A DNA stretch of 64,000 nucleotides from Macrostomum lignano (Eukaryota): contig NIVC01000342.1 of assembly GCA_002269645.1 (NCBI GenBank), positions 248,001 to 312,000 of the forward strand, written 5' to 3'. The position numbers were made by a program, and so were the translations under genes. The notes below the pieces were generated by a model. The model did no database searches, was not told where the DNA came from, and was given only the letters and a program-made list of their open reading frames with translations. Below, in pieces: positions 3,904 to 63,300 of this stretch (positions within the stretch are counted from its first letter, which is position 1; every line of letters starts with the position of its first letter).

Positions 3904-4099
3904 ACGGCTAATCCTACCAACTTCGTGTAACATGCAAAGCTTTCATGTTTTAATTCAATCTTTTCTTTTCCACGCACAGTGCGCCACATTTTGCACGAGT
4001 TTCTTCTGGCACTAGCTGCTCAAATTAGTCCTTTGCAGCAAGACTTTCACGCATGAGAAGGTCATCAACTGTAATGCTGCACCTAAGAAGCAATGTGCT

Positions 4100-10366: not shown

Positions 10367-10956
10367 AACGATGTCAAAGTATCAGCAGTCGAAGAAACAA
10401 AATGGCCAAGCAGGACCGACATGAACTCGAACGAGATCCTGCAGTGCAGATGGCTGGCCCCCATATGCACATACTGGCAGGTTTCTGCAGCAGCTCATCT
10501 GCATCTCAGCTAGTCAATTGACTCTCCCAGTCAATGCAATTACCTTCTTCAACTCCTCTTCTCCCCGCCCCGGCTCTCTGACAGCAGTTCCTCTCTGTGC
10601 TCCCGTTGGGAAAAAAATATTCTATATTTTGACGGGCGATCTTGGTGAGCTGGGTTGGGCGAATTTGCATTCTCGCTCAGACCAGACCAGACCAGACTAA
10701 AGGCTGGCTGAAAGTCCGTCATTTGCATAAATGTGCAATGCAAGTCAGGAAAAGATTATTTCGTTTGTTCCGACGAGGGGTGCAACACTGGCTGGCTGAA
10801 ACGTGTTGAATGTTTGTCAACTGTTAGCTCTTTTGCATTTGAAATTCAGTTTTATATCGGTTGAGCACCACCAATGGCGTTAATGGGCGTCTGTCAGAAA
10901 ATCAGGACTTTACTTAGTGAACAGCTGACAAAGATAAAATAGTATATATACGCTCC

Positions 10957-16035: not shown

Positions 16036-16775
16036 AGGGTGCTCACAGCCCCTGTCTCTAGGAGCGCATTCCTCTATGCAATGACCGCTGCTCAAGACTT
16101 CCTTTGAGAAAAACTATTGAAAAAAAGCACACAAAAAAGTGAAAGCAATGAGCTCTGCTTCAATTCTTCCTTCTTGGCTTAGTTAATCTGACCGACTTTG
16201 GACTTAGCCGAAGTGACAGCTAATCTAGATCTGCCGGCAGCTAATTTCCATTGCTGCGCGCAGACAGCCAGCGGATCTGCTTCTCTTTCTCATCGTGCAG
16301 CTTTGCTGGACAGATTTGCAGATTTCCCCTCTTTCCATACCTCTGCCAGCTGTTGCTAATTTTGTCCAGAAGACGTCTCCAAGCCGTGTATAGGGGGTGA
16401 GGCAGCACCATGCTGATTGAGCCCTGCCCTAGCATTCTTGCAAAGTACACACTTGCATTTAGAGAGTAAAAATTAACATAGCGCTTGTAATGCTTGCGTC
16501 ATCTTTTAAGTCAGCCACTGTGTAAGAGCGGAATGGCAAATTAAACTGAGAGCTCCAGGGCTCGCCCTGCTGTGATAGGGTAGCAGCTGCAGTAGAAATA
16601 CAGAGTACGGTGGGGGGCTGCGACCCAGCACCCAGTCTCAGCACTGTACAGTTAGTCACCCTGCAACGTATCTCTAGCTCTAGCTTAAACTTAAAGTACA
16701 CACGAGCTTGACTTCAACTCAATGTTTGAATTCTTTCAGCCTACGAAATCAGACGGACGAACCTCGAGTGACGCG

Positions 16776-20194: not shown

Positions 20195-21789
20195 CAGCGT
20201 TCCCACTGATTGTGCATTGGCTCGACTTGAGTTTTCTCATTCATGCTTGTAGTCTTGCCCGATCGAACAGCCTGATTTAGATTCTACAGTGTATTCGTAT
20301 TTCAGAATTGTTAACTTTGGTCAGCTTTGTTGTTACAAAGACGCTTTTTGTATCGATTGCTTCTGCTGTGCTTTCGGACTGGCAAAACTTTCATTCAGAA
20401 GCAGAGACAGCTTGAACTCCTGCCTGCCCATCAGCAGAGGTCTCGCTTATTGAATTGGGTTCCCACCGCGATGGGGAAGTGAAAAAAATGTCTCCAGCAT
20501 CCCCAGTCTGCGCCAGATAAGAATCAGCTGGTCCTCCGGAGAAGCAGTGGGGGGGCAGTTCTTCAAACCAGCAAGAGCTCCCATCAATCCATGCATCTTT
20601 AATGATCCGCCTCCCTCCGGGATGCCTATCGTGCCTTTTTCGCTCAGCTTCAGGACCCATCGCGCCTATCAACGGCGCTTAGATGGAACAAAGACTAGTA
20701 AGAAAGTTAGTCTCTGTCCCGCAGTATCTTAGCAGGTTGATTGACTGATGCCTGTCCGCCAGCAGAGGCAGCGAGTCTTTATATAACTTTTCAATTTTCC
20801 TTTCCGTTTGCGCAGTTGGCTTGCCTAATTCTTGCTTCTATAAATAGTCTGCTCTCTGTCGTTTTTATTAGAAACAAAACGCGCTGGGGCCGCTTTTTTG
20901 TTATTATTTTTCCAACCGTTTAGTTTTTGGAATTTTTGTTATTGTGTTGACGCCCCTCCGCCCCGCTACCCTGGAGTCGCTTTCATCAAAATCTTGATTG
21001 CTGTGCGCGAGAATTGTTCAAGTTCGCCAGTTCGCTCACCTTTGCTTCTATTCGCGTCCTGTCACCAAGCCTGTGTTTCGTTTTGCTTGCCTCTGCCCCG
21101 ATGCAGCTCTTGCATCAGCTTTGAAGTATTGCTTATATATGACCCCCTTCCATCCTGTTTGTTTAATTAATACCTGGACTTGTGACCTGTCCGTCTGTCT
21201 TAACGGTTAACCACAGTCTGGAGTTACCAAAGTCTCCCTAAACAAGCCTCATCTGTCATACGCTTAAAGTTGTTCAATTTGCACACTAACTAGGCTGACG
21301 TGTGCACCTCCTTTGGTCTGGTCTTGCCCGTTTAAAAGAATGAATTCACGAAAACTCTAGCGAGTCTGTCCCCTCCTCCAAGTTTTGATTGATATATTTT
21401 GATGACAAAACTTTGTAAATTGTAATTTTTTACGCGTCCTACTTGTAGCTTTAAAGTTGCTACTGACTGTTATTGCATTGGAATTTGTAATGCAGTTGAT
21501 CTATATTGATTGTACAGAACAAAGTAATATATTAGCAAGAAAAAAGTATTCCTGCACACGAATATGCGTGAGATTTTCCATACATTGTGAACCTTCTTAC
21601 AGACGTGCTCTCTCTCTTGTTTGTATCTTTTTTTGCCAGCTGAAAAAATGGTACACAGTCGGGATATTTCACTAACACTGACTGCAGCCTGCAGGTGCTA
21701 TTTTCGATTGGCGGTGCGCAACACACTAAGAGAATTGTTTACAGATTACTTCACACGGGTGTTGTTCACAACGATATCTAAATTTTGTG

Positions 21790-23010
21790 AGGCGAGTGTA
21801 GATTCTAGGACCGGTGAGGCGAGTGTACATTCTATTACCTGTGAGGAGAGTGTACATTCTAGGACCGGTGAGGAGACAGTACATTCTAGGACCTGTGAGG
21901 AGACAGTACATTCTAGGACTGGTGAGGGGGCTGTACATTCTAGGACCAGTGATGAGAGTGTACATTCTAGGATCGGTGAGGAGAGTGTACATTCTAGGAC
22001 CGGTTAGGCGAGTGTACTTTCTAGGACCGGTTAGGCGAGTGTACATTCTAGGACCGGTGATGAGAGTGTACATTCTAGGATCGGTGAGGAGAGTGTACAT
22101 TCTAGGACCGGTTAGGCGAGTGTACTTTCTAGGACCGGTTAGGCAAGTGTACATTCTAGGACCGGTGATGAGAGTGTACATTCTAGGACCGGTGAGGCGA
22201 GTGTACTTTCTAGGACCGGTGAGGCGAGTGTACATTCTAGGACCGGTGAGGAGAGTGCACATTCTTAGGACCGGTGAGGAGAGTGCACATTCTAGGACCG
22301 GTGAGGAGAGTGCACATTCTAGGATCGGTGAGGAGAGTGTACATTCTATAACCGGTGAGGAGAGTGCACATCCTAGGACCGGTGAGGAGAGTGTACATTC
22401 TATAACCGGTGAGGAGAGTGTACATTCTATAACCGGTGAGGAGAGTGTACATTCTATAACCGGTGAGGAGAGTGTACATTCTAGGACCGGTTAGGCGAGT
22501 GTACATTCTAGGACCGGTGATGAGAGTGTACATTCTAGGACCGGTGAGGCGAGTGTACTTTCTAGGACCGGTGAGGAGAGTGTACATTCTAGGACCGGTG
22601 ATGAGAGTGTACATTTTAGGACCGGTGAGACGAGTGTACATTTTAGGACCGGTGAGGAGAGTGTACATTCTAGGACCGGTGAGGCGAGTGTACTTTCTAG
22701 GACCGGTTAGGCGAGTGTACATTCTAGGACCGGTGAGGCGAGTGTACATTCTAGGACCGGTGAGGAGAGTGCACATTCTTAGGACCGGTGAGGAGAGTGC
22801 ACATTCTAGGACCGGTGAGGAGAGTGCACATCCTAGGACCGGTGAGGAGAGTGTACATTCTAGGACCGGTGAGGAGAGTGTACATTCTAGGACCGGTGAG
22901 GAGAGTGCACATTCTAGGATCGGTGAGGAGAGTGTACATTCTAGGACCGGTGAGGAGAGTGTACATTCTAGGACCGGTGAGGAGAGTGTACATTCTAGGA
23001 CCGGTGAGGA
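21790..23010. repeat. 27-bp minisatellite (GAGGAGAGTGTACATTCTAGGACCGGT), about 45 units
   Basis: Seen directly. Confidence 0.97.
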
Positions 23011-23830
23011 GATTGTAGTCACCACAAGCTGTGAAGCTGTTGTACAATCTAGAACCCACTGGGCCACTGCAAACTATTATGTTCATCTACAAGTCAATGC
23101 GAAGGCTGCATGACAGGCCCTTGTACGTGCAGCATATTAAGGGATTGCGGAAAACCAGCTAGACTAGAAAATGGACAAGACTGAGGAACAGAAAAAACTC
23201 AAACGGAAAAATGTTCCTCACGCTCCTGCCTTGCGTTGTAGAAATTTCAAGCCTGGCCTCTCCTAGTCTAGTCCGGCAAATCCCAAAGTCTGATCTGAGG
23301 AATTCCGACAGATTCTTACCCATTAATCTTCCCTAGGAATCCCAACGGTGCAGCCTCTTTTATTCTCCATCACCTTCGGCCTAAGAAATTCTGACCGCGT
23401 CAGTTTTGTGGCGTTCAGCGGCCGGAATCTCCGCGAAACACGACGGACCAGATGCCGCCTGCCAGTCTCCTCCGCTCGCCGATCTTTCCTCCCGATCGGC
23501 AACATCCGGTAGGTAAGGGGAGCGCGAACAGCTAGGGGAGGGGATTAACTTCCTACGGACAATTATCCGCTAGGAATGCCGCAGACCCGGCCGAGGGGTG
23601 CGCGAAAATGTTTATGTGCCAAACTTGCAAGCGTCAGTTGGCGTGCGAGATTTCAATAGAAGAAGTGCCACAGGAGATCATGCGAGATGCTCGGCATTTA
23701 TATAGGCGCGTATCGGTTTAAGAGCGCCTCGAACTGGAACTGGCCGCGCACTTTTATAAGCTGTGGCATCAAGAGCTTCCATATAATGGAAGGTTACGAG
23801 CGTAATATGAAGCGAGAATTTCGAGACCAT

Positions 23831-25237: not shown

Positions 25238-26369
25238 GTCTCTCTCTGTCTACCATCTGGGAAGCGGAAATCAACTTTGACCGAAATTCGACAAGAATCG
25301 CCGTCACAGCAAACCACGCCGTCTCTGTCGATGAGTCTGGCGCTGTCTCAGCGGATATCTGATGCAGCACGCAGAGGCACCTAAAACTCAAGGCCTGGGC
25401 AGAGCAAATTTTGACAGGTCGCATGTCTCAAGCAGTTCCCGGACGTTATTTTATGAAAATCCACTTTGCCACTTAATTTTTTATGTATCAGGTGGCAGGC
25501 GTGGAGGAGAGAGGGACCTTACGTAATAGCTGTACCGGGCCCTTGGACTGTCCCAGACTTCTCCGCAAGCCTGCATACCGTCCGCACCCGCTTGCCTAGA
25601 AATTGGCTATTGGAAATGCTTGAAGACAGTGGACGGCACCTCAGTGTTTCCCTATTAAAAAGTTAGTTTTGAATCGATACTTGGAGTAGGATTGACTCGC
25701 TGATCACAGTGAAGCTAGGGACGCTTCATGGACAAAGCGAATAGCCAGACAGGAAAGACATCAATAAAGGAGGATCGCGGAAGCTAGTTTTACTCCTCGA
25801 GCCGAAATAAAGCCAAGGCGCAAGGAGGAAGAGCATCGTAATAATAAATATAGCTTAGCTCTTTGTTCCGCGAGGCCGATATCCGAGCAGAAAATTGATC
25901 AGCAGATTTTGGGGCACCAGTCTTGGGTAAGAGGGGCAGGATGGAGGAAATCAAGATTGCTGGCGTAAGGGGCAAAGCCAAGCCGCTAATAAAAAGCCAG
26001 ATTATTATGACGGGGGGGGGGGCAATCGGCAAGGTGATACTGATGAGGCGGCTATCAGGAGACTGGGGTGGGGCGCTGGGGTTGAAGGTGGCAATAGAAA
26101 CTGAAATCCTTATCTGCCTTTTCACTCTTACCTCACTGTCTGCCTCCTTTCACTATCCAGGGTTGTGGGGGCCGTTTGGAATTGAAAATTCTCCCTGAAA
26201 CTTCTGCCCTGTAGCTGGCGGCTCCAAAACCTCTTCGCTTCAGTCAAGGACACCTTGAACCAGAATCTGGAATACCGACTCTTCTAACCATCGTATTCAA
26301 GACACGATGTGGCGGAAGTATAGTAAATTTTGCTTGCCTAAAACAATATAATAATAACTATTTATTAAT

Positions 26370-26872
26370 CGACGTTGGGTACGTCGTGTACGTTGGGTAC
26401 GTTGGGTACGTTGGGTACGTCGGGTGCGTCCGGGTATGTTGAGTACGTTGGGTACGTCCGGGTACGTTGGGTACGTCCGGGTATGTTGAGTACGTTGGGT
26501 ACGTCCGGGTATGTTGAGTACGTCGGGTACGTCCGGGTACGTTGGGTACGTCCGGGTACGTTAGGTACGTCCGGGTATGTTGAGTACGTTGGGTACGTCC
26601 GGGTATGTTGAGTACGTCGGGTACTTCCGGGTACGTTGAGTACGTCCGGGTATGTTGAGTACGTCGGGTACGTCCGGGTACGTCCGGGTACGTTGGGTAC
26701 GTCCGGGTATGTTGAGTACGTCGGGTACGTCCGGGTACGTCCGGGTACGTTGGGTACGTCCGGGTATGTTGAGTACGTCGGGTACGTCCGGGTACGTCCG
26801 GGTACGTTGGGTACGTCCGGGTATGTTGAGTACGTCGGGTACGTCCGGGTACGTTGGGTACGCCGGTGGACG
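26370..26872. repeat. 9/10-bp GGGTACGTY(C) satellite with a ~57-bp higher-order unit
   Basis: Seen directly. Confidence 0.95.
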
Positions 26873-27489
26873 TCGGTGGCCATCGGAATATTGCACGGGT
26901 TTGTTAAACCGCCTGCTTGGTAGACTTGATTGATAGACTGAAGGTTTGAAAGCAGAAAAATGTCTACACCAGTGGGAAATGTTGAGCAAAGGGAGAAAGT
27001 GCCGCTCCAGATTTCGGTTCCGAAACCTCTTTGGTTCAGTAACCGAAAGCGTGGCGGTAAACCCTAGTAGGATATATAAAACCTACTGCAATACTTTCTT
27101 CAAGGCATCTCCTTCCATCCAGAGCCTCTTCGCGCACTCCTTGCTGGCCTTTCTTCTGCTGCCCGCGCAGCCACGCTAATGGGGAGGCTCCGGTAAAAGA
27201 AATTGTAGAAAGAAGCGATGAATTCTGGAATTCTTACTTTCTAGCTTCGCTTCTGGCCAAAGCTGCATTTTCCTATTTCAGTTGGTCAGCCTTCAGCTTT
27301 CAGCCCTTCAACTTATAAGTTGGCCTTCATTTTGGCTTGCTTCCATTCAACCAGCTAGAACGGATAACTGCTGGGTTCTGCACTTTCTATCAGGGTTTCA
27401 TAATTCAGGGGCTGTTCTTGATGCTCTTAAATAAGTGTTACGCTTCCAGAATGTTTTTTATTCAGCAGGTGTTTGTCCCCTCCCTTCCT

Positions 27490-36017: not shown

Positions 36018-36254
36018 CTTTTATTGTGCCATAGACATTTGTCCTTGACAAAGTGGGTACAATGCTTTTTTGTAGCATCGAAGATTTAAACTGCGGCAGG
36101 AAATTCCTTCCACACTGGCACTTGTGAAGCACCAGAAGTTCGTCTCGCTCTATGCAGCGAGCCAGAATCCCTTTGACAGAATCCCTCTCAGAATCCCGCA
36201 GGACTGGTGCAGATGAAGAAGCTTGTTCTAAGTTTTAAAAAAAAAATTAATTAC

Positions 36255-36566
36255 NNNNNNNNNNNNNNNNNNNNNNNNNNNNNNNNNNNNNNNNNNNNNN
36301 NNNNNNNNNNNNNNNNNNNNNNNNNNNNNNNNNNNNNNNNNNNNNNNNNNNNNNNNNNNNNNNNNNNNNNNNNNNNNNNNNNNNNNNNNNNNNNNNNNNN
36401 NNNNNNNNNNNNNNNNNNNNNNNNNNNNNNNNNNNNNNNNNNNNNNNNNNNNNNNNNNNNNNNNNNNNNNNNNNNNNNNNNNNNNNNNNNNNNNNNNNNN
36501 NNNNNNNNNNNNNNNNNNNNNNNNNNNNNNNNNNNNNNNNNNNNNNNNNNNNNNNNNNNNNNNNNN
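36255..36566. other. Assembly gap (312 N)
   Basis: N run. Confidence 1.
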
Positions 36567-36729: not shown

Positions 36730-37625
36730 TACATAGATATATGATTCGAGCCATGGAGATACTATATAGATATATGATTCAAGCCATGGAGATACTATAT
36801 AGATATATGATTCAAGCCATGGAGATACTACATAGATATATGATTCAAGCCATGGAGATACTATATAGATATATGATTCAAGCCATGGAGATACTATATA
36901 GATATATGATTCAAGCCATGGAGATACTACATAGATATATGATTCAAGCCATGGAGATACTATATAGATATATGATTCAAGCCATGGAGATACTACATAG
37001 ATATATGATTCAAGCCATGGAGATACTACATAGATATATGATTCAAGCCATGGAGATACTACATAGATATATGATTCAAGCCATGGAGATACTACATAGA
37101 TATATGATTCAAGCCATGGAGATACTATATAGATATATGATTCAAGCCATGGAGATACTACATAGATATATGATTCAAGCCATGGAGATACTACATAGAT
37201 ATATGATTCAAGCCATGGAGATACTACATAGATATATGATTCAAGCCATGGAGATACTACATAGATATATGATTCAAGCCATGGAGATACTATATAGATA
37301 TATGATTCAAGCCATGGAGATACTACATAGATATATGATTCAAGCCATGGAGATACTACATAGATATATGATTCAAGCCATGGAGATACTACATAGATAT
37401 ATGATTCAAGCCATGGAGATACTACATAGATATATGATTCAAGCCATGGAGATACTACATAGATATATGATTCAAGCCATGGAGATACTATATAGATATA
37501 TGATTCAAGCCATGGAGATACTACATAGATATATGATTCAAGCCATGGAGATACTACATAGATATATGATTCAAGCCATGGAGATACTACATAGATATAT
37601 GATTCAAGCCATGGAGATACAATAT
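36730..37625. repeat. 33-bp minisatellite (ATGATTCAAGCCATGGAGATACTACATAGATAT), about 27 near-identical units
   Basis: Seen directly; the 312-aa MIQAMEILHRY ORF is a by-product. Confidence 0.97.
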
Positions 37626-37687
37626 AGACACTGTCCGATGGTAATAATAAATGCCCAGTTTCACTCAGAGAATTCTTAAACGCGTAC

Positions 37688-45078
<7,391 letters not shown>

Positions 45079-46578: not shown

Positions 46579-47774
46579 CAGGGGTGTCACCATGGATTTG
46601 ATGCTGGAGGGGGAACGAAGTCAGGAATTCTTCATGTACATGACTAAATTCCTACATGTACATGAATAAATTCCTACAGGTACATGACTAAATTCCTACA
46701 TGTACATGAATAAATTCCTACAGGTACATGACTAAATTCCTACATGTACATGACTAAATTCCTACATGTACATGATTAAATTACTACATGTACATGACTA
46801 AATTCCTACATGTACATGATTAAATTCCTACATGTACATGATTAAATTCCTACATGTACATGATTAAATTCCTACATGTACATGATTAAATTCCTACATG
46901 TACATGATTAAATTCCTACATGTACATGATTAAATTCCTACATGTACATGACTAAATTCCTACATGTACATTATTAAATTCCTACATGTACATGATTAAA
47001 TTCCTACATGTACATGACTAAATTCCTACATGTACATTATTAAATTCCTACATGTACATGATTAAATTCCTACATGTACATGATTAAATTCCTACATGTA
47101 CATGACTAAATTCCTACATGTACATTATTAAATTCCTACATGTACATGATTAAATTCCTACATGTACATGATTAAATTCCTACATGTACATGATTAAATT
47201 CCTACATGTACATGATTAAATTCCTACATGTACATGACTAAATTCCTACATGTACATGACTAAATTCCTACATGTACATGACTAAATTCCTACATGTACA
47301 TGACTAAATTCCTACATGTACATGACTAAATTCCTACATGTACATGACTAAATTCCTTATTTTGGCGCCGCAGACACTCATTTTGGCGCAGCAGGCACTC
47401 ATTTTGGCGCCGCAGACACTCATTTTGGCGCCGCAGACACTCATTTTGGCGCAGCAGGCACTCATTTTGGCGCAGCAGGCACTCATTTTGGCGCCGCAGA
47501 CACTCATTTTGGCGCCGCAGACACTCATTTTGGCGCCGCAGAACACTCATTTTGGCGCCGCAGGCACTCATTTTGGCGCCGCAGGCACTCATTTTGGCGC
47601 CGCAGGCACTCATTTTGGCGCCGCAGGCTATAATTTTCAGCGCCCTGAAGCAAAATTATTGATTTCCATATCGGGTCCTGAGGTGAGGTGGGGGAAAGCA
47701 TTAACATATCCCCCCCCAAAGCTTTTACGGGGGGGGCACATGTCCTGCCTGTCCCTCTGGTGGCGACGGCCCTG
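46579..47774. mobile_element. Second copy of the hAT-type MITE, with two internal 22-bp arrays
   Basis: TIRs CAGGGGTGTCACCA / TGGCGACGGCCCTG; near-TSD ACAATAAAG (46570-46578) vs ACAATAAG (47775-47782); (ATGTACATGAYTAAATTCCTAC) about 33 units at 46634-47357, then (GCACTCATTTTGGCGCCGCAGG) about 12 units. Confidence 0.85.
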
Positions 47775-48130
47775 ACAATAAGCATAAGTAGGTATATAGT
47801 AAATCTTTTAATACCTGTCTGACAAATTCAACTGTGAAAGGTGAAAGTGAGACACGAACTCTTGAGTCATGCACTTCAGTGATGGGAATTCCAGTTCGAT
47901 CAGGAATGCAGGAGAGAGTACGCTGCTCAGAGGGGGGGGCGAGTGAGTCGCACGGGATAGAAAGAGAATAGATGGATGGATTGAGAGGAATGGGAAAGCA
48001 AGCAATCACCATGGTGACTGGGAAAAATAAACACACGCTTTTCCTCCCCTGCCCACATGTTCCCACCCCCCCCCCCCAATACTCACACCTCAGCCTCCTG
48101 CATGCTTTCCCCATTGATGAGGACCTAAAC

Positions 48131-49113: not shown

Positions 49114-49739
49114 CTCTTTTCAAATGTTGCGTTTTAGGAAGTCATCCTGGACAACCCCCAAGTGGCAATACGCTTATCGAATGCGTAAGCTGCGTCACTC
49201 GCAAAGTGAGAAAAAATAATCTCGCTTGTAGTTTGGAACTTATGACTGTTGCTGAGTATATTTGAGCTCATTGAAATTATGCTTTTAAATACGAGCTGTG
49301 ACACCCATCTCACACTACATGTACGTGCGCTCCTTGACACCTTGGCACTTGGCACCAGGGGCCAATTTTACGAAGCCTTCACTGCGTGGGACTTTCCTTG
49401 TCCCCCACCCCACCGAAACTGCGAAGCACTGCGGATTGGTACAAACAATGCCGCACTGCATATGCATTTTCCTCTCTAACGAACCAAGCCCAGCAATTCC
49501 GCAGATGGACACAGAGAGTGTGTAAACTAAAAAAAGTAACAGGAAAAGTCGGTTAATACTTAGTACAAAATCTTTTTATGAAGCTTCTGCGTCATTAATT
49601 ATAAAAGGGTTTCGTGAGAAAGTTCCCATCAAAATTGCTAAAATAAATGAAAGTTGTAAAAATTTAATTGGAGTTGCTCATGGGTCATTTTTATTGATCT
49701 CCTTAGATCATGAGTTGGCAAACTTTTTACCTTAGGGCC

Positions 49740-50224
49740 AGGAGAGAGGAGAGAAGGGAGAGGAGAGAAGGGAGAGGAGAGAAAGGAGAGGAGAGAAGGG
49801 AGAGGAGAGAAGGGAGAGGAGAGAAGGGAGAGGAGAGAAGGGAGAGGAGAGAAGGGAGAGGAGAGAAGGGAGAGGAGAGAAGGGAGAGGAGAGAAGGGAG
49901 AGGAGAGAAGGGAGAGGAGAGAAGGGAGAGGAGAGATGGGAGATGAGAGAAGGGAGAGGAGAGATGGGAGAGGAGAGAAGGGAGAGGAGAGAAGGGAGAG
50001 GAGAGAAGGGAGAGGAGAGAAGGGAGAGGAGAGAAGGGAGAGGAGAGAAGGGAGAGGAGAGAAGGGAGAGGAGAGAAGGGAGAGGAGAGAAGGGAGAGGA
50101 GAGAAGGGAGAGGAGAGAAGGGAGAGGAGAGAAGGGAGAGGAGAGAAGGGAGAGGAGAGAAGGGAGAGGAGAGAAGGGAGAGGAGAGAAGGGAGAGGAGA
50201 GAAGGGAGAGGAGAGAAGGGAGAG
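49740..50224. repeat. 15-bp purine repeat (GAGAGGAGAGAAGGG), about 32 units
   Basis: Seen directly. Confidence 0.97.
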
Positions 50225-50230
50225 CGCGGC

Positions 50231-50400
50231 CACATTAATTTGGAGCTTGTGTGCAGGAAAGTGAATCGTGCAAAGACGAATCATGCGATTCACAGCCATG
50301 AGGCACAGAAAGTGTACATGGCGGTCGATTACATGCCTGTAGAAAGTCAGGGCCATTGTACACCCCGTGTGAGCGTGCGTCCGCAGCCATGCCCTGCGAA
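50231..50400 (+). mobile_element. SINE family B, 5'-truncated copy
   Basis: CACATTAATTTGG, GGCACAGAAAGTGTACATG and TGTACACCCCGTGTGAGCGTG shared with 15713 and 24795. Confidence 0.5.
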
Positions 50401-51358
50401 TATTGATGAGAAGGCAGTGATCTCTGACAGATCACAGAACCGGACATTAAACTGGATGCACCCGTAGAGATTCCTATGCGCTTGGCATTCCAGAATTCCA
50501 ATCTGTGCTTCGCCTAAAACTGGCCCAGTGCTTTTTACCGTTGTTTTTGTTAAAAGAGCTTACTAGTTTCTGGCTTGATAGAAAAATTAAATTAGTTTCC
50601 ACTACTAATAGTAGCAAGTTTAAAAAGTAGAATAGTGAAATTCGAATGTCTGTTTGTATCTTTCTAAACAATAAATTGCCCCAAGTCAATAAAAAGTTGA
50701 AATTCGAACTAAATGGTCATATTTTCGTTCTAAATACTTTCATATATATTTAATGGTCATTTATTAATTTACAATTTAGTTTTCTGCGGTAAGTTTTGTT
50801 TTAATCATGCTTCTAAAAATAGAAACAGCATTAGGCCTGAATTCAGTTCCGGGCATTTATGTAACTACACAAGGACCACTTGGTAGTTGAAGGAAGAAGC
50901 AACACTTTTAAAATTAAAATACCCCAAAATTCTTAAATTTGAGTTACTTACATTCACTACCCAGTGGATCCTTGAAACTACTGCAAAAATGATTTCAATA
51001 GTTAGGCTAGATCTACAGTTGCTCTATACAAGAAATTATAATGCTGCTCAAGCAACAAGGTCAATATGGGATTAATGGAATTATTTGCCACGAATGCAGC
51101 AGCCGATATCATCATATAGCTACTAGCTGAAGTGCGAACCATGTTCAAGGATTCTGCCAGCTTATAAACACAAATAACATGAACTGTTGAAACTTAAAAG
51201 CATACCGAATTATAGTAACAATGTTGCATATATAGTTAGTAATGTGAGTTAGAGAACCCGGCTCATTGGAGCCCATGGGTCATCCGCATTGGTCAGAGGC
51301 TAATTCATTTAGCAGCAATAAATACAGTTAGACATTGCGGAATTCCAGCCTTCAAAAC

Positions 51359-54054: not shown

Positions 54055-54515
54055 AAGCGTACAAGCCACGGACAGCTGCACATGACACACACGAGAGCGT
54101 ACAAGCTACGTACAGCTGCACATGACACACACGAGAGCGTACAAGCTACGGACAGCTGCACATGACACACACGAGAGCGTACAAGCTACGGACAGCTGCA
54201 CATGACACACACGAGAGCGTACAAGCTACGGACAGCTGCACATGACACACACGAGAGCGTACAAGCCACGGACAGCTGCACATGACACACACGAGAGCGT
54301 ACAAGCTACGGACAGCTGCACATGATGCACACGAGAGCATACAAGCTACGGACAGCTGCACATGATGCACACGAGAGCATACAAGCTATGGACAGCTGCA
54401 CATGACACACACGAGAGCATACAAGCTATGGACAGCTGCACATGATGCACACGAGAGCGTACAAGCTACGGACAGCTGCACATGACACACACGAGAGCAT
54501 ACAAGCCACGGACAA
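54055..54515. repeat. 40-bp minisatellite (ACAAGCTACGGACAGCTGCACATGACACACACGAGAGCGT), about 11 units
   Basis: Seen directly. Confidence 0.96.
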
Positions 54516-54630: not shown

Positions 54631-56752
54631 TCAGTGGCACCAGTCAGGGCAACCAGACGGCGATAGCAGAGCGGCCGCCAGAGCGTTAGCAAAATTGTGA
54701 CAGTTGTTGCACAACAAGGTATAATTGCCATGCACCTGCTTGTAGCTCTGGGCGCAACGTCGGGCGCAGGCTAAACCACCAGGCGCGTCGGGTCTGGCGC
54801 CGGCGCCAAGACTGCGCAGAATACCGTTAGAGCATCGGTCGGAGGCGAACGGCCGGTCGTGCACCATCACGGAGCTTGATTGACTGTCGCCGATGAATTC
54901 GAATACAAGATTGGCGTAGCGGATCCAGCTGTGCCGGAACGGGTTCCAAGGGAAGGCGTACCAGTGCTGGTGAAAGATCCAGCATTTGTTGGCGCCAATG
55001 GATGACGGGCGTTGCGTGATGCTGTTGCCAAGGCAACTTGCTGGCCAGGTGCCGCCTAGAAAGACATTGTTGTCATCCGCTGGTCCAACCTGAGCAGAGG
55101 AGTGAGAAGATTAGCTGAATATTAGCCTATTAGCTGAGTATAGGAGAGTGAGTAGATCAATGAGTTGAGTAAAGGAGAGTGAGCAGATCAATCAGTTGGG
55201 TATAGGAAAGTGAGTAGATCAATCAGTTGAGTATAGGAGAGTGAGTAGATCAATCAGTTGAGTATAGGAGAGTGAGCAGATCAATCAGTTGAGTATAGGA
55301 GAGTGAGTAGATCAATCAGTTGGGTATAGGAGAGTGAGTAGATCAATCAGTTGAGTATAGGAGAGTGAGTAGATCAATCAGTTGAGTAAAGGAGAGTGAG
55401 TAGATCAATCAGTTGAGTATAGGAGAGTGAGTAGATCAATCAGTTGAGTAAAGGAGAGTGAGTAGATCAATCAGTTGAGTAAAGGAGAGTGAGTAGATCA
55501 ATCAGCTATTAGAATAGGAGAGTGAGTAGATCAATCAGCTATGAGTATAGGAGAGTGAGTAGATCAATCAGCTATTAGAATAGAAGAGTGAGTAGATCAA
55601 TAAGCTATTAGAATAGGAGAGTGAGTAGATCAATCAGCTATTAGAATAGAAGAGTGAGTAGATCAATACGCTATTAGAATAGGAGAGTGAGTAGAACAAT
55701 CAGCTATTAGAATAGAAGAGTGAGTAGATCAATAAGCTATTAGAATAGGAGAGTCGGTAGATCAATCAACTATGAGTATAGGAGAGTGAGTAGATCAATC
55801 AGCTATTAGAATAAGGAGAGTGAGTAGATCAATCAGCTATTAGAATAAGGAGAGTGAGTAGATCAATCAGCTATTAGAATAAGGAGAGTGAGTAGATCAA
55901 TCAGCTATTAGAATAAGGAGAGTGAGTAGATCAATCAGCTATTAGAATAGGAGAGTGAGTAGATCAATCAGCTATTAGTATAGGAGAGTGAGTAGATCAA
56001 TCAGCTATTAGTATAGGAGAGTGAGCAGATCAATCAGCTATTAGTATAGGAGAGTGAGTAGATCAATCAGCTATTAGAATAGGAGAGTGAGTAGATCAAT
56101 CAGCTATTAGAATAGGAGAGTGAGTAGATCAATCAGTTGAGTATAGGAGAGTGAGTAGATCAATCAGCTATTAGTATAGGAGAGTGAGTAGATCAATCAG
56201 CTATGAGTATAGGAGAGTGAGCAGATCAATCAGCTATGAGTATAGGAGAGTGAGCAGATCAATCAGCTATGAGTATAGGAGAGTGAGCAGATCAATCAGC
56301 TATTAGAATAGGAGAGTGAGTAGATCAATCAGCTATGAGTATAGGAGAGTGAGTAGATCAATCAGCTATGAGTATAGGAGAGTGAGTAGATCAATCAGCT
56401 ATGAGTATAGGAGAGTGAGCAGATCAATCAGCTATTAGTATAGGAGAGTGAGCAGATCAATCAGCTATTAGTATAGGAGAGTGAGTAGATCAATCAGCTA
56501 TTAGAATAGGAGAGTGAGTAGATCAATCAGCTATTAGTATAGGAGAGTGAGTAGATCAATCAGCTATTAGTATAGGAGAGTGAGTAGATTATGACTAAAG
56601 TAGGACAATAACGTGAGCAAATAAGAAAAAAATTGCAGCAACCGAAGCAATGCTGCACCAACCAGTAAACCTTGTTCAAGCGACAGGCCAGCCGAGGCAA
56701 CAGCTGACAAAATGATTAGTGTTGGAACTGAGAGCTGACTCAGAGTCGCCAT
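54631..56752 (-). CDS. PPPDE/DeSI-like permuted papain-fold (His-Cys dyad) protein with a predicted signal peptide, about 176 aa; exons 56752-56671 and 55079-54631 (alternative acceptor 55089)
   Basis: Stop-free 150-codon frame with FRHSWIRYANLVFEFIG and NYTLLCNNCHNFANAL (PPPDE HxxVxVxGxEYxFG / YxLxxxNCNxF motifs). Upstream exon MATLSQLSVPTLIILSAVASA joins in phase. The exon-1 link is less certain than the catalytic exon. Confidence 0.75.
55120..56590. repeat. 29-32-bp minisatellite (AGGAGAGTGAGTAGATCAATCAG + TTGAGTAT / CTATTAGAAT) filling the PPPDE-like gene intron
   Basis: Seen directly, about 48 units. Confidence 0.97.
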
Positions 56753-56939
56753 TTGGAGCGCAGAGTATATGAATTCTGATTATAATTCGTGCATGAATTT
56801 GCAGTTTATAATACCCAGTTGAGATATGAGAATAATCTTATCAGCCAATGTCGTCGCACTGCGTTGAGTTGAGTTTGAGTTCGACTCTGAGAACCATGCC
56901 GCTCTGCCCCCCCCCATATTTCAGGTTAGGGTAAAGTGT

Positions 56940-57165
56940 TAAGACTCACAACTAAAAGGTCGGGGGTTCGATTCACGACCCACTCGGAACAATTTGTGTC
57001 TTTGAGCGAGACAATTAACTCTGCATTGCTGCAGTTCACCCAGCTGTAAGATGGGTGCCAGCATTAGCTGGGGTAATTGAGGCTGTGTGGCGACCCCCCA
57101 GTCCTTGGACTGAACAGCCGTACGCAGCCCATTAAGGCAGGTGAAATCAATTATTATTATTATTA
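56940..57165 (+). mobile_element. SINE family A, 5'-truncated, with an internal deletion in the 3' body
   Basis: B box, central domain and ATT tail present; the TTCAGATGC...CACATCTGG segment is missing. Confidence 0.88.
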
Positions 57166-58234: not shown

Positions 58235-60296
58235 CTACGCTTTGCTCAGCTTCTCAAAAATATTTCCACTTGACTGTCGTTCTGACGCCAGAGGCGGATC
58301 TTCTCTACAAGGCGAAGCTGCTTCTTCCTCCTCGCCATTTTCATCAGCGTCGACATCCGTGTCGGCCATCGGTGGCGGTGTCGGCGTCGGTTCGCCATTG
58401 CCGTCGTCATCGTCCGGGTCGGCATCTGGATCCGCCTCCATAGGCGTATTCGCGTCATCGAATGCCTCCGTTGCTGCGCAATTATTTGCGTCCACATCCG
58501 GTTCCACTTGCGGGTCCGCATCCGGTTCCACTTCTGAGTCCGCATCCGGTTCCACTTCCAGGTCAGCATCCGCTTCCGCATCCAGTTCCACTTCCGGGTC
58601 CGCACCCACCTGCTTATGATTATAGATATTTTCTTCCAGCAAAGCACTCTTCCGGGCACAAGAGCTCGCGGAGACCGAACCGTCTTGACTTTCTGAACCG
58701 TTCATATCAACCCGATGCTTGCTCACTTCGTCGGCAACATCATCGTCTTCGTCTGACGAAGACGGACAATCGGCAACCAGACTGTTGAACATCGGATCGC
58801 GCAGGCCCGCGCGAAGTTGTCGCCGAATGGTCTCGGCCACTCGCAGCGCCCTGGCCGGCAGCTGTCGGAGTGCGCGAGTCGCTTCGGCAACAGCCTCAGC
58901 CAACGAATTAGTCGAGTCCGCCGTGGCGATGCCATCGGCATCCGTTCGCCTACGTCGCCGACGTCGAGCCACTTGACGCCGCTGCTGGGTCGGGGCGGGC
59001 GCCGATGATCCCAAATCGATCAGCGTTGCCGCGGCCGCCTCGCCGTCGCCAGCGGCTGTAGCCAGCAGGCCACCGTCGCGCAACTCCCGGCCCAGACGCC
59101 GGTAGTCGCCGTCTGTGAGGCAGATCTCGCTGGGATCGAGGCAGCCGGGTGCCAACGGCTGAGCAGCTGGCGACTCGTCCAGCTGTGGAGCTTCGTCGAA
59201 CTGGTCAGCGGCAGCGGGCTTGGACGGCCTCTGCGAGTCTCGCTGCTGTTCAGCTGGCTGAAGCAGCGACCGGAGCAGCTGTTGATTCTCGTAGAACGAC
59301 GGGCCGATGTGAGCGTCGGTCAGGAGGCGCCAGTCCTCCGGCTGCAGTCGGCGCAGTGATTTATTCTTGCGAGTCGGCTTCAACTGAACAGCGGAGATTC
59401 GCTCCCCAGTTGACAATAAAGATCGTTTTAATTTCTCGCGCCGGACAATCAGATAGCAGAGATTGCGCACGCGTTCCATGTCGTGGCGCAGGCACACGAA
59501 CATCTGGGCTCGCTCCTGCAGCCGGCGCTCCTCCGTGTTCACCGGCCGCAGAGACTGGTCGTCTGGCTGCTCCATCAGTGGCCGGCATCCGTTGGCCTGT
59601 TGGTTAGCAAAAAAGCAACGGTTTAAACTGAGCCACAGGACACTCACTGGCAGGTTAATTGTAAACGAGTACTGAAAGCACCTACCGTTCTCTTCAGCTT
59701 CCAGTAGTCCAGCAGAAGCGACAGGGCGAGCGCGTCAACCTTGACGGGAGCCATCTTAGCGATGAGCTCCTCTTTGCTGAACAGGGTGTAGAAATTCGCC
59801 TCCAGCTCTTTCAACCTGCGGGAGGTGTGGCTTGACTTTTAATCTTATTGTCTCGACTCGACTCGAGAAATGAGTTTGTCTGTTTGTCTGTGTCAGTCTG
59901 TCTCTCTGTCATAGTGTCTTAGTGTCTGCCTGTCTCTCTGTCTTAGTGTCTGAGTGTCTCTGTCTTAGTGTCTTAGTGTCTCTGTCTTAGTGTCTTAGTG
60001 TCTGTATGTCTCTCTGTCTTATTGTCTGTATGTCTCTCTGTCTTAGTGTCTGTATGTCTCTCTGTCTTATTGTCTGTATGTCTCTCTGTCTTAGTGTCTG
60101 TATGTCTCTCTGTCTTATTGTCTGTATGTCTCTCTGTCTTAGTGTCTGTATGTCTCTCTGTCTTATTGTCTGTATGTCTCTCTGTCTTAGTGTCTGTATG
60201 TCTCTCTGTCTTAGTGTCTGTATGTCTCTCTGTCTTAGTGTCTGTATGTCTCTCTGTCTTATTGTCTGAGTGTCTCTGTCTTAGTGTCTTAGTGAC

Positions 60297-60369
<73 letters not shown>

Positions 60370-63300
60370 TAGTGTCTCTTTGTCTGTCTGCCTGTCTGTT
60401 TTTCCGTTCTTAAATATTTCCAAACAAATCTATCTAAAATCAATTATTAACAATCTACCAAGTCCCTATTTGTAAATCAAATTGTCCAAAAACCTTACAG
60501 CTGATTTCGCTGATTCTCCTGACCGTCCGGATCGTCGCCAGGATCAGCAGCGGTGGCGGCGGCTCTCACAGCAGCTGCCAGAGGGTCATCTTCAACCTGA
60601 GCCTCCTTGGCTTCCGAATCCGGCCGAGGCTGCAGCTCGGACTCGAAGCCACCATCCTCGCTAGGCAGCTCGGGTTTCAGCTCAGCAGCGCCATCTCCGT
60701 CAGGAGTCTCAGATTTGACCGCAGTCGACGAATCGATGGCATCTTCAAACATGACGTCTTCATCAAGCCGCGGCCGCTTCGCATCCAGCAGCGAATCCTG
60801 GCTGGCGTCCGGGTCCGCCTCCGCTTCCGCGTCTTCGTCCGCGACTTCCGCCGCAAGCTTTGCCCGGGCGGCTGATGGCGGCCGGCCTCGCTTCCGACCG
60901 CGGCCCCGGCCTCGGCCAGCCCCGGCTGCGCCGCCAGCACCACCGCCGCCGCCTCCGCTGACGCCTTTGTACTTCGGCCTGGCTTTGGTAGGCGAGCTGT
61001 GCGGAGTGACGCCCGTCTGCCTGAACTTGTCACCGTGCCGCTCGCAGTAGGCCAGGTTGCGGACGTCACCGCCTGATAACACCTGAGTTACGGCGGCAGG
61101 GATGTAGAGCTTGGTTGCTGAGTGCTTGGGATAAAAGCTGGCTATGGGATAACTGACTTGGGATTTGGCTATGGGATAACTGATTTTGGATTTGGTTATG
61201 AGATAACTGATTTTGGATTTGGCTATAGGTTAACTGATTTGGGATATATTTGTCAATGGGATATCTAGTTTGGAATCAAGCAAGAGCACAATCGGGATAA
61301 AAGCGCAGCAACTGTTCACCTGTCTCATGACCAGCTTGTGCCTGAAAGCGCAGGTAACGTGAAAAGCCACTTTGCACTGCTTCACGCAGCACTGAATGCA
61401 GGCACCGACTTTCTCGCGGCACAGCCGGCACACCAGATTCCATCTGCCAGTTGGAATCTCATTCAGCCTAGTGATTGGCTCCATTCGCTCAGGATCGGCA
61501 AATCCAACCTCTGGGATCCACAGGGCGCAGGACACGTGACACCAGGTGGCGCCGTCTCTCGTAGATTTCATAGCGCCGCCGCTGCTTGAGCACAGGGCGC
61601 AGATTGGTCGGACGCCCAGGCTGCAGGGCCGGCACAGCCAGCTGCCGCTGGGCACCGAGGCCACACCGTAGCAGGCCTGGTGCACCGGGGTGTCGCAACC
61701 GTCGCAGAACAGAATCTCGTTGTCCTCTTCGACTTCGAGCGACTGGCAGACACTACAAGGCACCGTGGTGTCGTACTCGATGCCCAGGCCGGCCACGGTG
61801 CGGAGACGGTCCAGCATGCGCTCGTGCGCCAGTGACTCCGCGGCGGTGAACACGGCTTCCAGACTGTCCAGCGACACCGAAGCCGAGCCGGACGTCGCGT
61901 CGATCCAGCGTCGGTCGAGCTCGTCGGAGCAGTAGAGCCGGCACCGGGGCTCCGGTTCCCCTGGTCGAATAGCGACAGGCCCGGTGGAGGTCTCCTGGGT
62001 GTCCGGGTCAAACGTGTAGTCGTCAAGGCTGGTGAGCAACTTCTTCGGCAGGCGCCACTTAGGCGTCGGCGTCAATTCGACGTCCACGCTGTCGCATTCG
62101 ACTAAGCAGTCGTCGGCATCCAGATAGCGGACAGACGGCTTTGGTTGCTCCTGCCTGGCGAGGACGGGCACCTGAACTCCGCGCTGCCATTCGTGACGCC
62201 AGGGATCTGACACCTGGGGATCGAGGCCGGATACTATGCACTTCTGTGTTTTAGGGATAGCTAGGAGTGGGATGGCCGCTTTGTGGGGTAGCTAGGAGTG
62301 GGATGGCCGCTTTGTGGGGTAGCTAGGAGTGGGATGGCCGCTTTGTGGGGTAGCTAGGAGTGGGATGGCCGCTTTGTGGGGTAGCTAGGAGTGGGATGGC
62401 CGCTTTGTAGGGTAGCTAGGAGTGGGATGGCCGCTTTGTGGGGTAGCTAGGAGTGGGATGGCCGCTTTGTGGGGTAGCTAGGAGTGGGATGGCCGCTTTG
62501 TGGGGTAGCTAGGAGTGGGATGGCCGCTTTGTGGGGTAGCTAGGAGTGGGATGGCCGCTTTGTAGGGTAGCTAGGAGTGGGATGGCCGCTTTGTGGGGTA
62601 GCTAGGAGTGGGATGGCCGCTTTGTGGGGTAGCTAGGAGTGGGATGGCCGCTTTGTGGGGTAGCTAGGAGTGGGATGGCCGCTTTGTAGGGTAGCTAGGA
62701 GTGGGATGGCCGCTTTGTGGGGTAGCTAGGAGTGGGATGGCCGCTTTGTGGGGTAGCTAGGAGTGGGATGGCCGCTTTGTGGGGTAGCTAGGAGTGGGAT
62801 GGCCGCTTTGTGGGGTAGCTAGGAGTGGGATGGCCGCTTTGTGGGGTAGCTAGGAGTGGGATGGCCGCTTTGTGGGGTAGCTAGGAGTGGGATGGCCGCT
62901 TTGTAGGGTAGCTAGGAGTGGGATGGCCGCTTTGTGGGGTAGCTAGGAGTGGGATGGCCGCTTTGTGGGGTAGCTAGGAGTGGGATGGCCGCTTTGTGGG
63001 GTAGCTAGGAGTGGGATGGCCGCTTTGTGGGGTAGCTAGGAGTGGGATGGCCGCTTTGTGGGATAGCTAAGAGTGGGATGGCCGCTTTGTGGGGTAGCTA
63101 GGAGTGGGATGGCCGCTTTGTAGGGTAGCTAGGAGTGGAATGGCCGCTTTGTAGGGTAGCTAGGAGTGGGATGGCCGCTTTGTGGGGTAGCTAGGAGTGG
63201 AATGGCCGCTTTGTAGGGTAGCTAGGAGTGGGATGGCCGCTTTGTGGGGTAGCTAGGAGTGGGATGGCCGCTTTGTGGGGTAGCTAGGAGTGGGATGGCC

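Follow-up and report, generated by a model that had tools for sequence, protein, structure and literature searches.

On the minus strand of the 64,000-nucleotide (64-kb) stretch of Macrostomum lignano DNA analysed in this work (contig NIVC01000342.1, positions 248,001 to 312,000; hereafter the window), positions 56752 to 54631 are occupied by a gene whose product, judged from its sequence, is likely to be a thiol enzyme of the PPPDE type exported to the secretory pathway. An earlier reading of this locus, in the following referred to as the original prediction, had proposed an apparently secreted, disulfide-rich protein related to PPPDE/DeSI enzymes. Direct reading of the minus strand yields a frame that stays open from 55110 to a TGA stop at 54633-54631 and is intact over 160 codons. 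It reads ...PFRHSWIRY...HGNYTLLCNNCHNFANALAAALLSPSGCPDWCH up to the stop codon and, more fully, ...NVFLGGTWPASC...PFRHSWIRYANLVFEFIG...DRC...LACARRCAQSYKQVHGNYTLLCNNCHNFANALAAALLSPSGCPDWCH. The histidine of the RHSW motif precedes the cysteine of the NNCHNF motif by 77 residues, which is the permuted order that had been predicted and that is upheld by the protein family and the structural model presented below. Nine cysteines are encoded in this exon (exon 2), the putative catalytic Cys127 and the eight others counted previously, and an NYT sequon is present in codons 54726-54718. Exon 2 is unable to start translation by itself. Because its frame contains no in-frame ATG before the conserved domain, the mechanical list of open reading frames (ORFs) holds only a GTG-started tail of 79 amino acids (54631-54870), just as had been stated.

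The start codon is probably provided by a separate first exon. Translation from an ATG at 56752 yields MATLSQLSVPTLIILSAVASAGLSLEQ, a GT at 56670 delimits an exon of 82 nucleotides that ends in phase 1, and an AG is found at 55081-55080. When 56671 is joined to 55079 the reading frame continues without interruption over 531 nucleotides and 176 amino acids, which bears out the earlier claim that a signal-peptide-like exon splices in phase to this acceptor. Our crude criteria for such an exon were a hydrophobic core, small amino acids at both -3 and -1 and a GT in phase 1; this exon, with TLIILSAVA as the core, was the sole upstream ATG exon to pass them. A second phase-1 donor available to it is TTG/GTGCAG, with the exon ending at 56659. 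TATAAA (56810) and TCAGAA (56779) are situated at suitable distances upstream of the ATG; transcription would start from the A at 56777, leaving a 5' untranslated region of about 25 nucleotides. As TATAAA occurs about 0.24 times per kb and strand in the window, the box supports a promoter without proving one. The guanine-plus-cytosine (GC) content of the exons is similar to that of neighbouring coding exons and unlike that of the flanks. A scan of the 64-kb window with the family hidden Markov model (HMM) detected no further copy of the PPPDE-like domain. Taken as a whole, the two-exon gene model with a signal peptide appears quite probable to us (Table 1).

Minisatellites lie on both sides of exon 2. 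In addition to the 33-bp array in the intron, a 40-bp array (54056-54514, 11.5 copies, 95% identity) begins about 120 nucleotides past the stop codon and shows up in the mechanical ORF list as stacked cysteine-rich pseudo-ORFs. A segment that looks tRNA-derived and resembles a short interspersed element (SINE; 56940-57000, minus strand) is located about 200 nucleotides upstream of the proposed promoter.

Table 1. Features of the PPPDE-like gene and its putative promoter, with positions in the window.
Feature	Position	Strand	Remarks
TATAAA box	56805..56810	-	Direct reading; 33 nt upstream of initiator-like TCAGAA
Initiator-like TCAGAA	56774..56779	-	Direct reading; putative start site
Proposed coding exon 1	56671..56752	-	82 nt, phase-1 end; MATLSQLSVPTLIILSAVASAGLSLEQ plus first base of Ala28 codon
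Predicted signal peptide, residues 1-21	56690..56752	-	Probable cleavage ASA/GL
Intron, 1591 nt, phase 1	55080..56670	-	Almost entirely taken up by a minisatellite
33-bp tandem repeat in intron	55137..56589	.	44.6 copies, 94% identity, Tandem Repeats Finder
Coding exon 2	54631..55079	-	Residues 28-176, entire PPPDE-like domain; TGA 54633-54631
N-terminal beta-strand NVFLGGTWPASC, mature residues 5-16	55033..55068	-	Counterpart of PYYFGxTxLxC; ends at invariant Cys16
Putative catalytic His50 codon (RHSW)	54931..54933	-	Family alignment; start of model strand 50-55
Near-invariant Glu61 codon (FEF)	54898..54900	-	Glu in 38/41 members
Tyr120 codon, inside NYT sequon 54726-54718	54721..54723	-	Counterpart of PPPDE active-centre Tyr by hhalign
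Putative catalytic Cys127 codon (NNCHNF)	54700..54702	-	Cys in 41/41 members; N-terminus of model helix 127-139
C-terminal CPDWCH, the invariant CPxWC ending of the family	54634..54651	-	Family alignments; relatives end 0-3 residues away

A homologue survey, as suggested along with the original prediction, places the window protein in a genuine protein family. A word-indexed search with the 176-amino-acid product found no relatives; these surfaced only when 1.84 billion cluster representatives were searched exhaustively with HMMER (E<=1e-3), which returned 40 hits, 38 of them real relatives (best E 3e-26 with phmmer). The two bacterial hits are spurious repeat proteins and were discounted, so that no real bacterial homologue emerged from this search. 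Conversely, the family HMM recognizes the exon 2 frame with E=2.2e-33. The relatives are small proteins, mostly of 140-220 amino acids, and all those with a species name stem from bivalves (Crassostrea virginica, Magallana gigas, Saccostrea echinata, Ostrea edulis, Tegillarca granosa, Mytilus coruscus and Mya arenaria). In the databases they are labelled as 'uncharacterized' or, automatically, as 'PPPDE domain-containing' or 'LRAT domain-containing', and a literature search on the family and its locus names retrieved no paper. The family is uncharacterised; so far it has been recorded mainly in bivalves, with at least one distant animal lineage in addition.

The members share a common plan. 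A hydrophobic signal peptide, often followed by one cysteine, leads into a PYYFG-x-T-x-L-C strand and a variable loop; the middle part reads HRWIYY-x-G-x-YFEFG, a cysteine and PAGYS-x-L-S-x-x-C-x3-C; and the C-terminal part comprises Y-x3-x-G-x-Y-x-L-x2-NNCHxF-x-N, ILC and CPxWC at or near the C-terminus. The invariant residues Cys16, His50, Glu61, Cys83, Cys105, Cys109, Tyr120, Asn126 and Cys127 are all kept in the window protein, as are Cys144, Pro145, Trp147 and Cys148 together with the CPxWC ending (alignments A1 and A2). Among 41 members, Cys127 is present in every one, Asn126 in 40, Glu61 in 38 and His50 in 37. A KR/RR-type (RxKR) site occurs in the loop of nearly all members in which the PYYFG-type motif was detected (all 41 of them save P0002). 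P0002 is the closest relative of the window protein, which it resembles in layout. The dibasic site, the cysteine preceding the motif and Cys139 are absent from both, and the window protein belongs to a divergent subgroup of the family. Annotated full-length members contain nine cysteines, eight plus the presumed catalytic one. In the window protein Cys32 and Cys124 take the place of the pre-motif cysteine and Cys139 and the total is again nine, which suggests that one disulfide may have been exchanged for another. Two or three whole-domain copies are arranged in tandem in the predicted bivalve proteins P0001, P0032 and P0036. Seven relatives (P0018, P0019, P0023, P0025, P0035, P0037 and P0040) run past CPxWC into a cysteine-containing tail (...WCLGSCNHA...).

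The kinship with PPPDE/DeSI proteins claimed in the original prediction is supported on three levels, namely by Pfam profiles, by a structural model of a relative and by the alignment of Tyr120 and Cys127. PF05903 (PPPDE) is the top Pfam match of the window protein (17.0 bits, E 0.0054, residues 146-174) and also the top match at E<1 of 22 of the 25 relatives searched, two of which, P0026 (33.0 bits) and P0007 (29.4 bits), exceed the threshold of 29.2 bits. As judged from these profile matches, the family occupies the margin of PF05903, with the window protein among its divergent members. The other two families with which a comparison had been proposed fared less well. The LRAT model PF04970 matches 16 of the 25 members weakly (best E 0.0022, about 18 bits, threshold 24.3 bits) and the window protein not at all, and PF00877 (NlpC/P60) yielded no Pfam match with either the window protein or the relatives searched. 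A phmmer search of the window protein against PDB sequences gave no match, and the family profile run against all PDB sequences retrieved PLAAT/HRASLS/LRAT and PPPDE chains only (E 0.2-0.9).

An AlphaFold2 model of the mature window protein (predicted local distance difference test score, pLDDT, 81; predicted template modelling score, pTM, 0.80) consists of strands 5-12, 50-55, 58-64, 69-74 and 84-93, followed by helices 102-117 and 127-139; loop 18-49 is of low confidence. In this model His50 is positioned at the start of a strand and Cys127 at the N-terminus of a helix, a papain-like arrangement in permuted order. When compared with a viral library, the model matched picornavirus polyproteins best, in a region which we take to correspond to the 2A H-box/NC proteins, followed by a hypovirus polyprotein and a Pandoravirus PPPDE protein, all without significance (E 0.09-0.5). 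A clearer result was obtained with the oyster member P0041, the model of which (pLDDT 81) matches the PPPDE structure 3ebq with E 0.033, a probability of 0.99 and a template modelling (TM) score of 0.56 over all 144 target residues. The only other real match in the PDB is 2wp7 (probability 0.98), with nothing else close. At the level of predicted structure, the P0041 model thus speaks for a PPPDE fold of the family.

The active centre of PPPDE proteins is formed by His38, Tyr101 and Cys108 (Luebben et al., PMC9012467). By hhalign, Tyr120 and Cys127 of the window protein fall on Tyr101 and Cys108 of PPPDE1 (P=8e-5) with a shared Tyr-Cys spacing of seven residues, and Cys127 is also aligned with Cys113 of PLAAT3. 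The PLAAT3 and PPPDE1 sequences used were verified to be 100% identical to their PDB chains. Direct reading furthermore shows that in PPPDE1 as well as in the family consensus the glycine of an F-G pair follows the catalytic histidine 13 residues on. Glu61, Asn125 and Asn126 are conserved near the active centre, and Glu61 may serve to orient His50. By its motifs and the fold modelled for its relative P0041, the window protein is assigned to the PPPDE type, even though this particular copy fails the Pfam threshold.

Export of the protein, the second element of the original prediction, is suggested by the signal peptides of its relatives, by the eight non-catalytic cysteines and by a conserved intron phase. 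Full-length relatives start with hydrophobic, classical N-terminal signal peptides; in P0002 signal peptide and domain reside in one exon. In the genes from C. virginica, O. edulis and M. arenaria, a phase-1 intron splits a codon four residues before the P of PYYFG, and the junction in the window is likewise of phase 1 and located five codons before the residue aligned with this P. The conserved phase-1 intron of the three bivalve genes therefore favours the acceptor at 55079. An in-frame product would also arise from a phase-0 donor, CTG/GTTGGT (exon end 56663), in combination with an acceptor at 55089. This splice was set aside because the bivalve genes carry a phase-1 intron at this position; signal peptide and whole domain are retained under both splices alike. 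Alternative hydrophobic first exons starting from 57568, 57525 and 57235 have worse donors or are part of the tRNA-derived repeat and are less likely.

A number of observations weigh against an exported PPPDE-type enzyme. The donor AAG/GTTTAC is poor when compared with CAG/GTGAAC of the neighbouring Jade gene and CGC/GTGAGT of the sFRP gene and departs from GTRAGT-like donors, and a stronger-looking acceptor, which would require a phase-0 donor, is found 10 nucleotides upstream (AG 55091-55090). Since 27-32% of shuffled upstream regions give a comparable signal-like exon by the same crude criteria, this exon taken alone goes only weakly beyond chance. The context of the ATG, described as good in the original prediction, is moderate, with a G at +4 and a C at -3. 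Neither AATAAA nor ATTAAA occurs within 630 nucleotides of the stop codon, and the collections searched contained neither transcripts nor identical proteins of the source organism. The NYT sequon, which had been adduced for secretion, is indeed present; it is weak evidence because its tyrosine is the active-centre tyrosine and a sequon at this position is found in just five of 41 relatives. As to the fold, the window protein stays below the PF05903 gathering threshold (17 vs 29.2 bits) with a match that covers the cysteine block alone. The best PDB match of its model in Foldseek is PLAAT3 (7zom; not significant at E=1.1, TM score 0.38 when normalised by query length and 0.51 by target length), with no PPPDE structure among the top 50 matches. 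The hhalign comparisons with the single PPPDE1 and PLAAT3 sequences cover the Tyr-to-Cys block only and leave the His strand unaligned. Finally, the number of non-catalytic cysteines is odd in P0002, and an experimental study of any family member was not found in the literature. With respect to the signal peptide, an in-phase signal-like exon and a conserved intron phase thus stand opposite a weak donor and a chance rate of about 30%. The complete interpretation, a PPPDE-type thiol enzyme that is encoded by a two-exon gene and enters the secretory pathway, we regard as fairly likely.

How does the protein compare with established members of the superfamily? The DeSI proteins occur in the cytosol or nucleus, where SUMO or ubiquitin conjugates or palmitoyl thioesters are their substrates. 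With PPPDE/DeSI (PF05903, MEROPS C97; human PPPDE1 and PPPDE2 are DESI2 and DESI1; structures 3ebq and 2wp7) the family shares the fold, as modelled for P0041, and the succession of strand beta-1, histidine, the F-G glycine at +13 and Y-x-L-x3-N-C-x-x-F-x-N, with a His-Cys spacing of 66-77 residues in the family and 70 in PPPDE/DeSI. Compared with these proteins, the signal peptide, the eight conserved structural cysteines, the CPxWC C-terminus and a long, usually dibasic loop inserted between beta-1 and the His strand are the family's own, and its conserved glutamate is placed two residues later than the glutamate in the PPPDE1 sequence used for comparison.

The statement that characterised relatives are all intracellular, made in the original prediction, does not hold for CLN5. 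This protein resides in the lysosomal lumen, is N-glycosylated and disulfide-bonded, and has its N-terminal strand pinned by disulfides (PMC9012467). CLN5 resembles the family in its PPPDE-like core, its His-Tyr-Cys centre and, as presumed for the family, its location in the lumen of the secretory/endolysosomal pathway. It demonstrates that proteins with a PPPDE-like fold can operate on lipids and beyond the cytosol, so that the export of such an enzyme has more precedent than the original prediction implied. CLN5 differs from the family in being much larger, with three domains in about 300 modelled residues, in its cysteine pattern and in being made as a type II membrane precursor. As neither the Pfam nor the PDB-sequence nor the Foldseek-PDB results contained a match to CLN5 (PF15014), the window protein is not CLN5. 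A description of a compact secreted PPPDE clade in animals, distinct from CLN5, was not found in the literature.

LRAT/PLAAT proteins (H-rev107, HRASLS; PF04970) and the picornavirus 2A H-box/NC proteins have the permuted NlpC/P60 core with histidine before cysteine and the NC-x-H-F motif in common with the family. LRAT/PLAAT proteins face the cytosol and possess a second histidine 12 residues after the first, whereas the family keeps a glutamate 11 residues after the histidine. Their C-terminal membrane anchor is absent from the window protein, which ends with CPDWCH without a hydrophobic tail. Because of the sub-threshold matches and the lack of the second histidine and the membrane anchor, the window protein is not an LRAT/PLAAT protein. 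Secreted NlpC/P60 cell-wall hydrolases, including amidases domesticated by eukaryotes, are thiol hydrolases of this superfamily and attack extracellular amide bonds. They are of bacterial origin and unpermuted, with cysteine before histidine, whereas histidine comes before cysteine in the window protein, which on account of this order is not a canonical NlpC/P60 enzyme.

The mode of action that we infer starts with a precursor of about 176 amino acids that would be directed into the endoplasmic reticulum by its signal peptide, with the ASA/GL bond behind residue 21 as the probable cleavage site. The remaining 155 or so amino acids of the mature protein would fold as a PPPDE-type (circularly permuted papain or NlpC/P60) domain. 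The nine cysteines in the mature parts fit four disulfides plus one free thiol, and about four disulfides probably brace the domain and leave Cys127 unpaired. Conjectural partners are Cys105 with Cys148 and Cys109 with Cys144 (a twin CX3C arrangement), Cys16 with Cys83 and, in the window protein, Cys32 with Cys124. His50 on a neighbouring strand would activate Cys127 at the N-terminus of its helix, with Tyr120 completing the PPPDE-type centre, and Cys127 would then attack a carbonyl group to form a covalent thioacyl-enzyme that is resolved by hydrolysis or transfer. In most family members, though not in the window protein and P0002, the dibasic site suggests that a proprotein convertase cuts the loop between strand 1 and the His strand, which would result in two disulfide-linked chains and possibly constitutes an activation step. 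The substrate would be luminal or extracellular. PPPDE1/2 hydrolyse isopeptides weakly and palmitoyl thioesters strongly, CLN5 combines depalmitoylase activity with that of a transacylase forming bis(monoacylglycero)phosphate (BMP) (PMC9012467, PMC13015511), and the wider superfamily cleaves peptidoglycan and lipid amides (PMC10318531). By analogy with these activities, we favour an extracellular or luminal hydrolase acting on an acyl-(thio)ester or on an isopeptide/amide bond.

The next gene downstream codes for an sFRP-like protein, as had been noted. Its exon for a signal peptide and a Frizzled cysteine-rich domain (CRD) is located 1.75 kb away on the same strand (52881-52330, minus; Pfam Fz E=2.4e-30). 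Within this sFRP-like gene (52881-51359, minus) a downstream ORF (...CPLLE...RRYLLMG...VKFMTEWN...) resembles the netrin-type module of sFRPs by eye, a Pfam NTR domain was not detected in this second exon, and CGC/GTGAGT is the probable donor of the Fz exon. At the five homologous loci examined, an sFRP neighbour is absent. In C. virginica and O. edulis the family genes are nested, in opposite orientation, within an intron of a large LRP/LDLR-like gene (L002 10001-16209; L003 10001-13515), and in C. virginica a second paralogue, 58% identical, follows 4.4 kb downstream. P0042 and P0044 share one contig. The M. arenaria gene adjoins a gene for an IIGP-type immune GTPase, that of M. coruscus a B-box gene and P0002 a globin-like ORF. 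The ATG of P0002 lies 3 nucleotides past the stop codon of this same-strand globin-domain ORF (L001 1435-2505; ...GAG TAG CCA ATG...), which itself starts just past an acceptor-like site. This could represent an operon-like or bicistronic arrangement or merely tight gene spacing.

Elsewhere in the window, an orthologue of Jade/PHD finger protein rhinoceros with PHD and zf-HC5HC2H domains is encoded at 62348-58235 on the minus strand (best database identity 46-48% at full coverage). Three minus-strand segments (37964-38593, 40403-40891 and 41456-41887) are probable exons of an ADAM/reprolysin-type metalloprotease, the first with a disintegrin-like motif and the second with a weak Reprolysin match under the Pfam threshold (E 0.0062). 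A plus-strand ORF at 16722-17681 combines a signal-peptide-like N-terminus with leucine-rich repeats (LRR_8 E=2.2e-15). A large part of the 64 kb consists of minisatellites. Further tandem-repeat blocks, which all produce long repetitive ORFs on both strands, are found at 1050-4015, 9016-10470, 21621-23113, 26365-26989, 36741-37679, 40902-41435 (where a short GACA/CAGA-type unit is repeated over a long run), 47326-47775, 49727-50467 and 59998-60372. A tRNA match of 34.2 bits was obtained at 38823-38892 (plus), and tRNA-derived, SINE-like looking segments at 56940-57000 and 38635-38910 (minus) translate as ...GRESNPRP.... A run of N at about 36250-36560 is an assembly gap and gives rise to X-filled ORFs.

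What else could the protein be? The main specific alternative, which we consider unlikely, is a secreted antibacterial cell-wall hydrolase that cuts stem peptides or amide bonds of peptidoglycan as an immune or digestive effector. The NlpC/P60-superfamily fold combined with secretory architecture would suit such a role, and so would the lineage-specific expansion apparent from the tandem oyster paralogues (4.4 kb apart in C. virginica; P0042/P0044), the multi-domain versions P0001, P0032 and P0036 and the position of the M. arenaria copy beside an immune GTPase gene. Eukaryotic domestication of such amidases is in fact documented by bacterium-derived effectors of ticks (PMC10318531). Closest to the family in sequence and fold, however, are eukaryotic PPPDE proteins and not bacterial peptidoglycan hydrolases, the exhaustive search offered nothing bacterial apart from the two spurious repeat proteins, and our literature search found no expression or infection data. 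A connection with Wnt signalling had been put forward because of the adjacent sFRP gene, and fatty-acyl thioester hydrolysis is possible for enzymes with a PPPDE fold (PMC9012467). The protein would then act as an extracellular Wnt deacylase that partners the secreted Frizzled-CRD protein encoded 1.75 kb downstream on the same strand and, like Notum, strips Wnt of its palmitoleate ester. With no sFRP neighbour at the five homologous loci this proposal is left with adjacency alone, no sequence feature points to Wnt, and the activities tested in relatives concern thioesters and isopeptides, not serine O-esters; we consider it extremely improbable.

The two remaining alternatives dispute the enzyme itself or its export, and we give each a low probability. 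A secreted non-enzymatic ligand, toxin-like precursor or matrix component might merely use the PPPDE scaffold, possibly with Cys127 engaged in a disulfide. The conserved core comprises eight cysteines including Cys127, the mature part of P0002 has eight in total, so that full pairing is arithmetically possible, and hormone and toxin precursors typically carry dibasic processing sites. On the other hand, His50, Tyr120, Asn126 and Cys127 are as conserved as the structural cysteines, which would not be expected for a dead enzyme, the nine cysteines of the annotated full-length members leave one unpaired, and in the model Cys127 occupies the N-terminus of a helix like the nucleophiles of papain-like enzymes. 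Alternatively, the locus might not be a working secreted gene at all, be it that exon 2 is unexpressed or decaying or that another first exon without a signal peptide is used and the protein is intracellular like DeSI. The weak donor with its competing acceptor 10 nucleotides upstream, the chance signal-like exons in about 30% of shuffles, the missing poly(A) signal, the C at -3 of the ATG and the absence of a transcript from the collections searched would all be accounted for in this way, and GC at third codon positions (GC3) amounts to 0.64 compared with 0.75-0.79 in neighbouring genes. Such a fate is difficult to reconcile with an intact frame of 160 codons that keeps all family-invariant residues, with nine cysteines in the family pattern, which a cytosolic protein could hardly maintain, with the signal peptides present in all full-length relatives and with an intron phase conserved in three bivalve genes. 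We therefore continue to prefer an exported thiol enzyme of the PPPDE type.

PPPDE/DeSI proteins have been studied as cytosolic and nuclear deSUMOylases and deubiquitinases and recently as depalmitoylases. To our knowledge, the sole characterised PPPDE relative outside the cytosol is the lysosomal protein CLN5, the product of a human neurodegeneration gene. At its most far-reaching, and very improbably, the family might represent an extracellular class of animal thiol enzymes, mostly activated by convertases, that edit post-translational marks, with the copy beside sFRP acting as a Notum-like Wnt regulator of a different fold. Possible activities of such enzymes are the removal of fatty acyl groups from lipidated secreted proteins (Wnt, Hedgehog or peptide hormones) or the reversal of isopeptide cross-links of the transglutaminase type in clot, byssus or matrix. 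Should the signal peptide or the activity fail to hold up, the window protein would merely be a divergent PPPDE paralogue of little interest. If our reading is correct, the compact, disulfide-stabilised branch with signal peptides would mean that animals export PPPDE chemistry, and its members would be small, stable proteins with which to learn what extracellular PPPDE-type enzymes cleave, be it lipid esters, isopeptides or cell-wall bonds.

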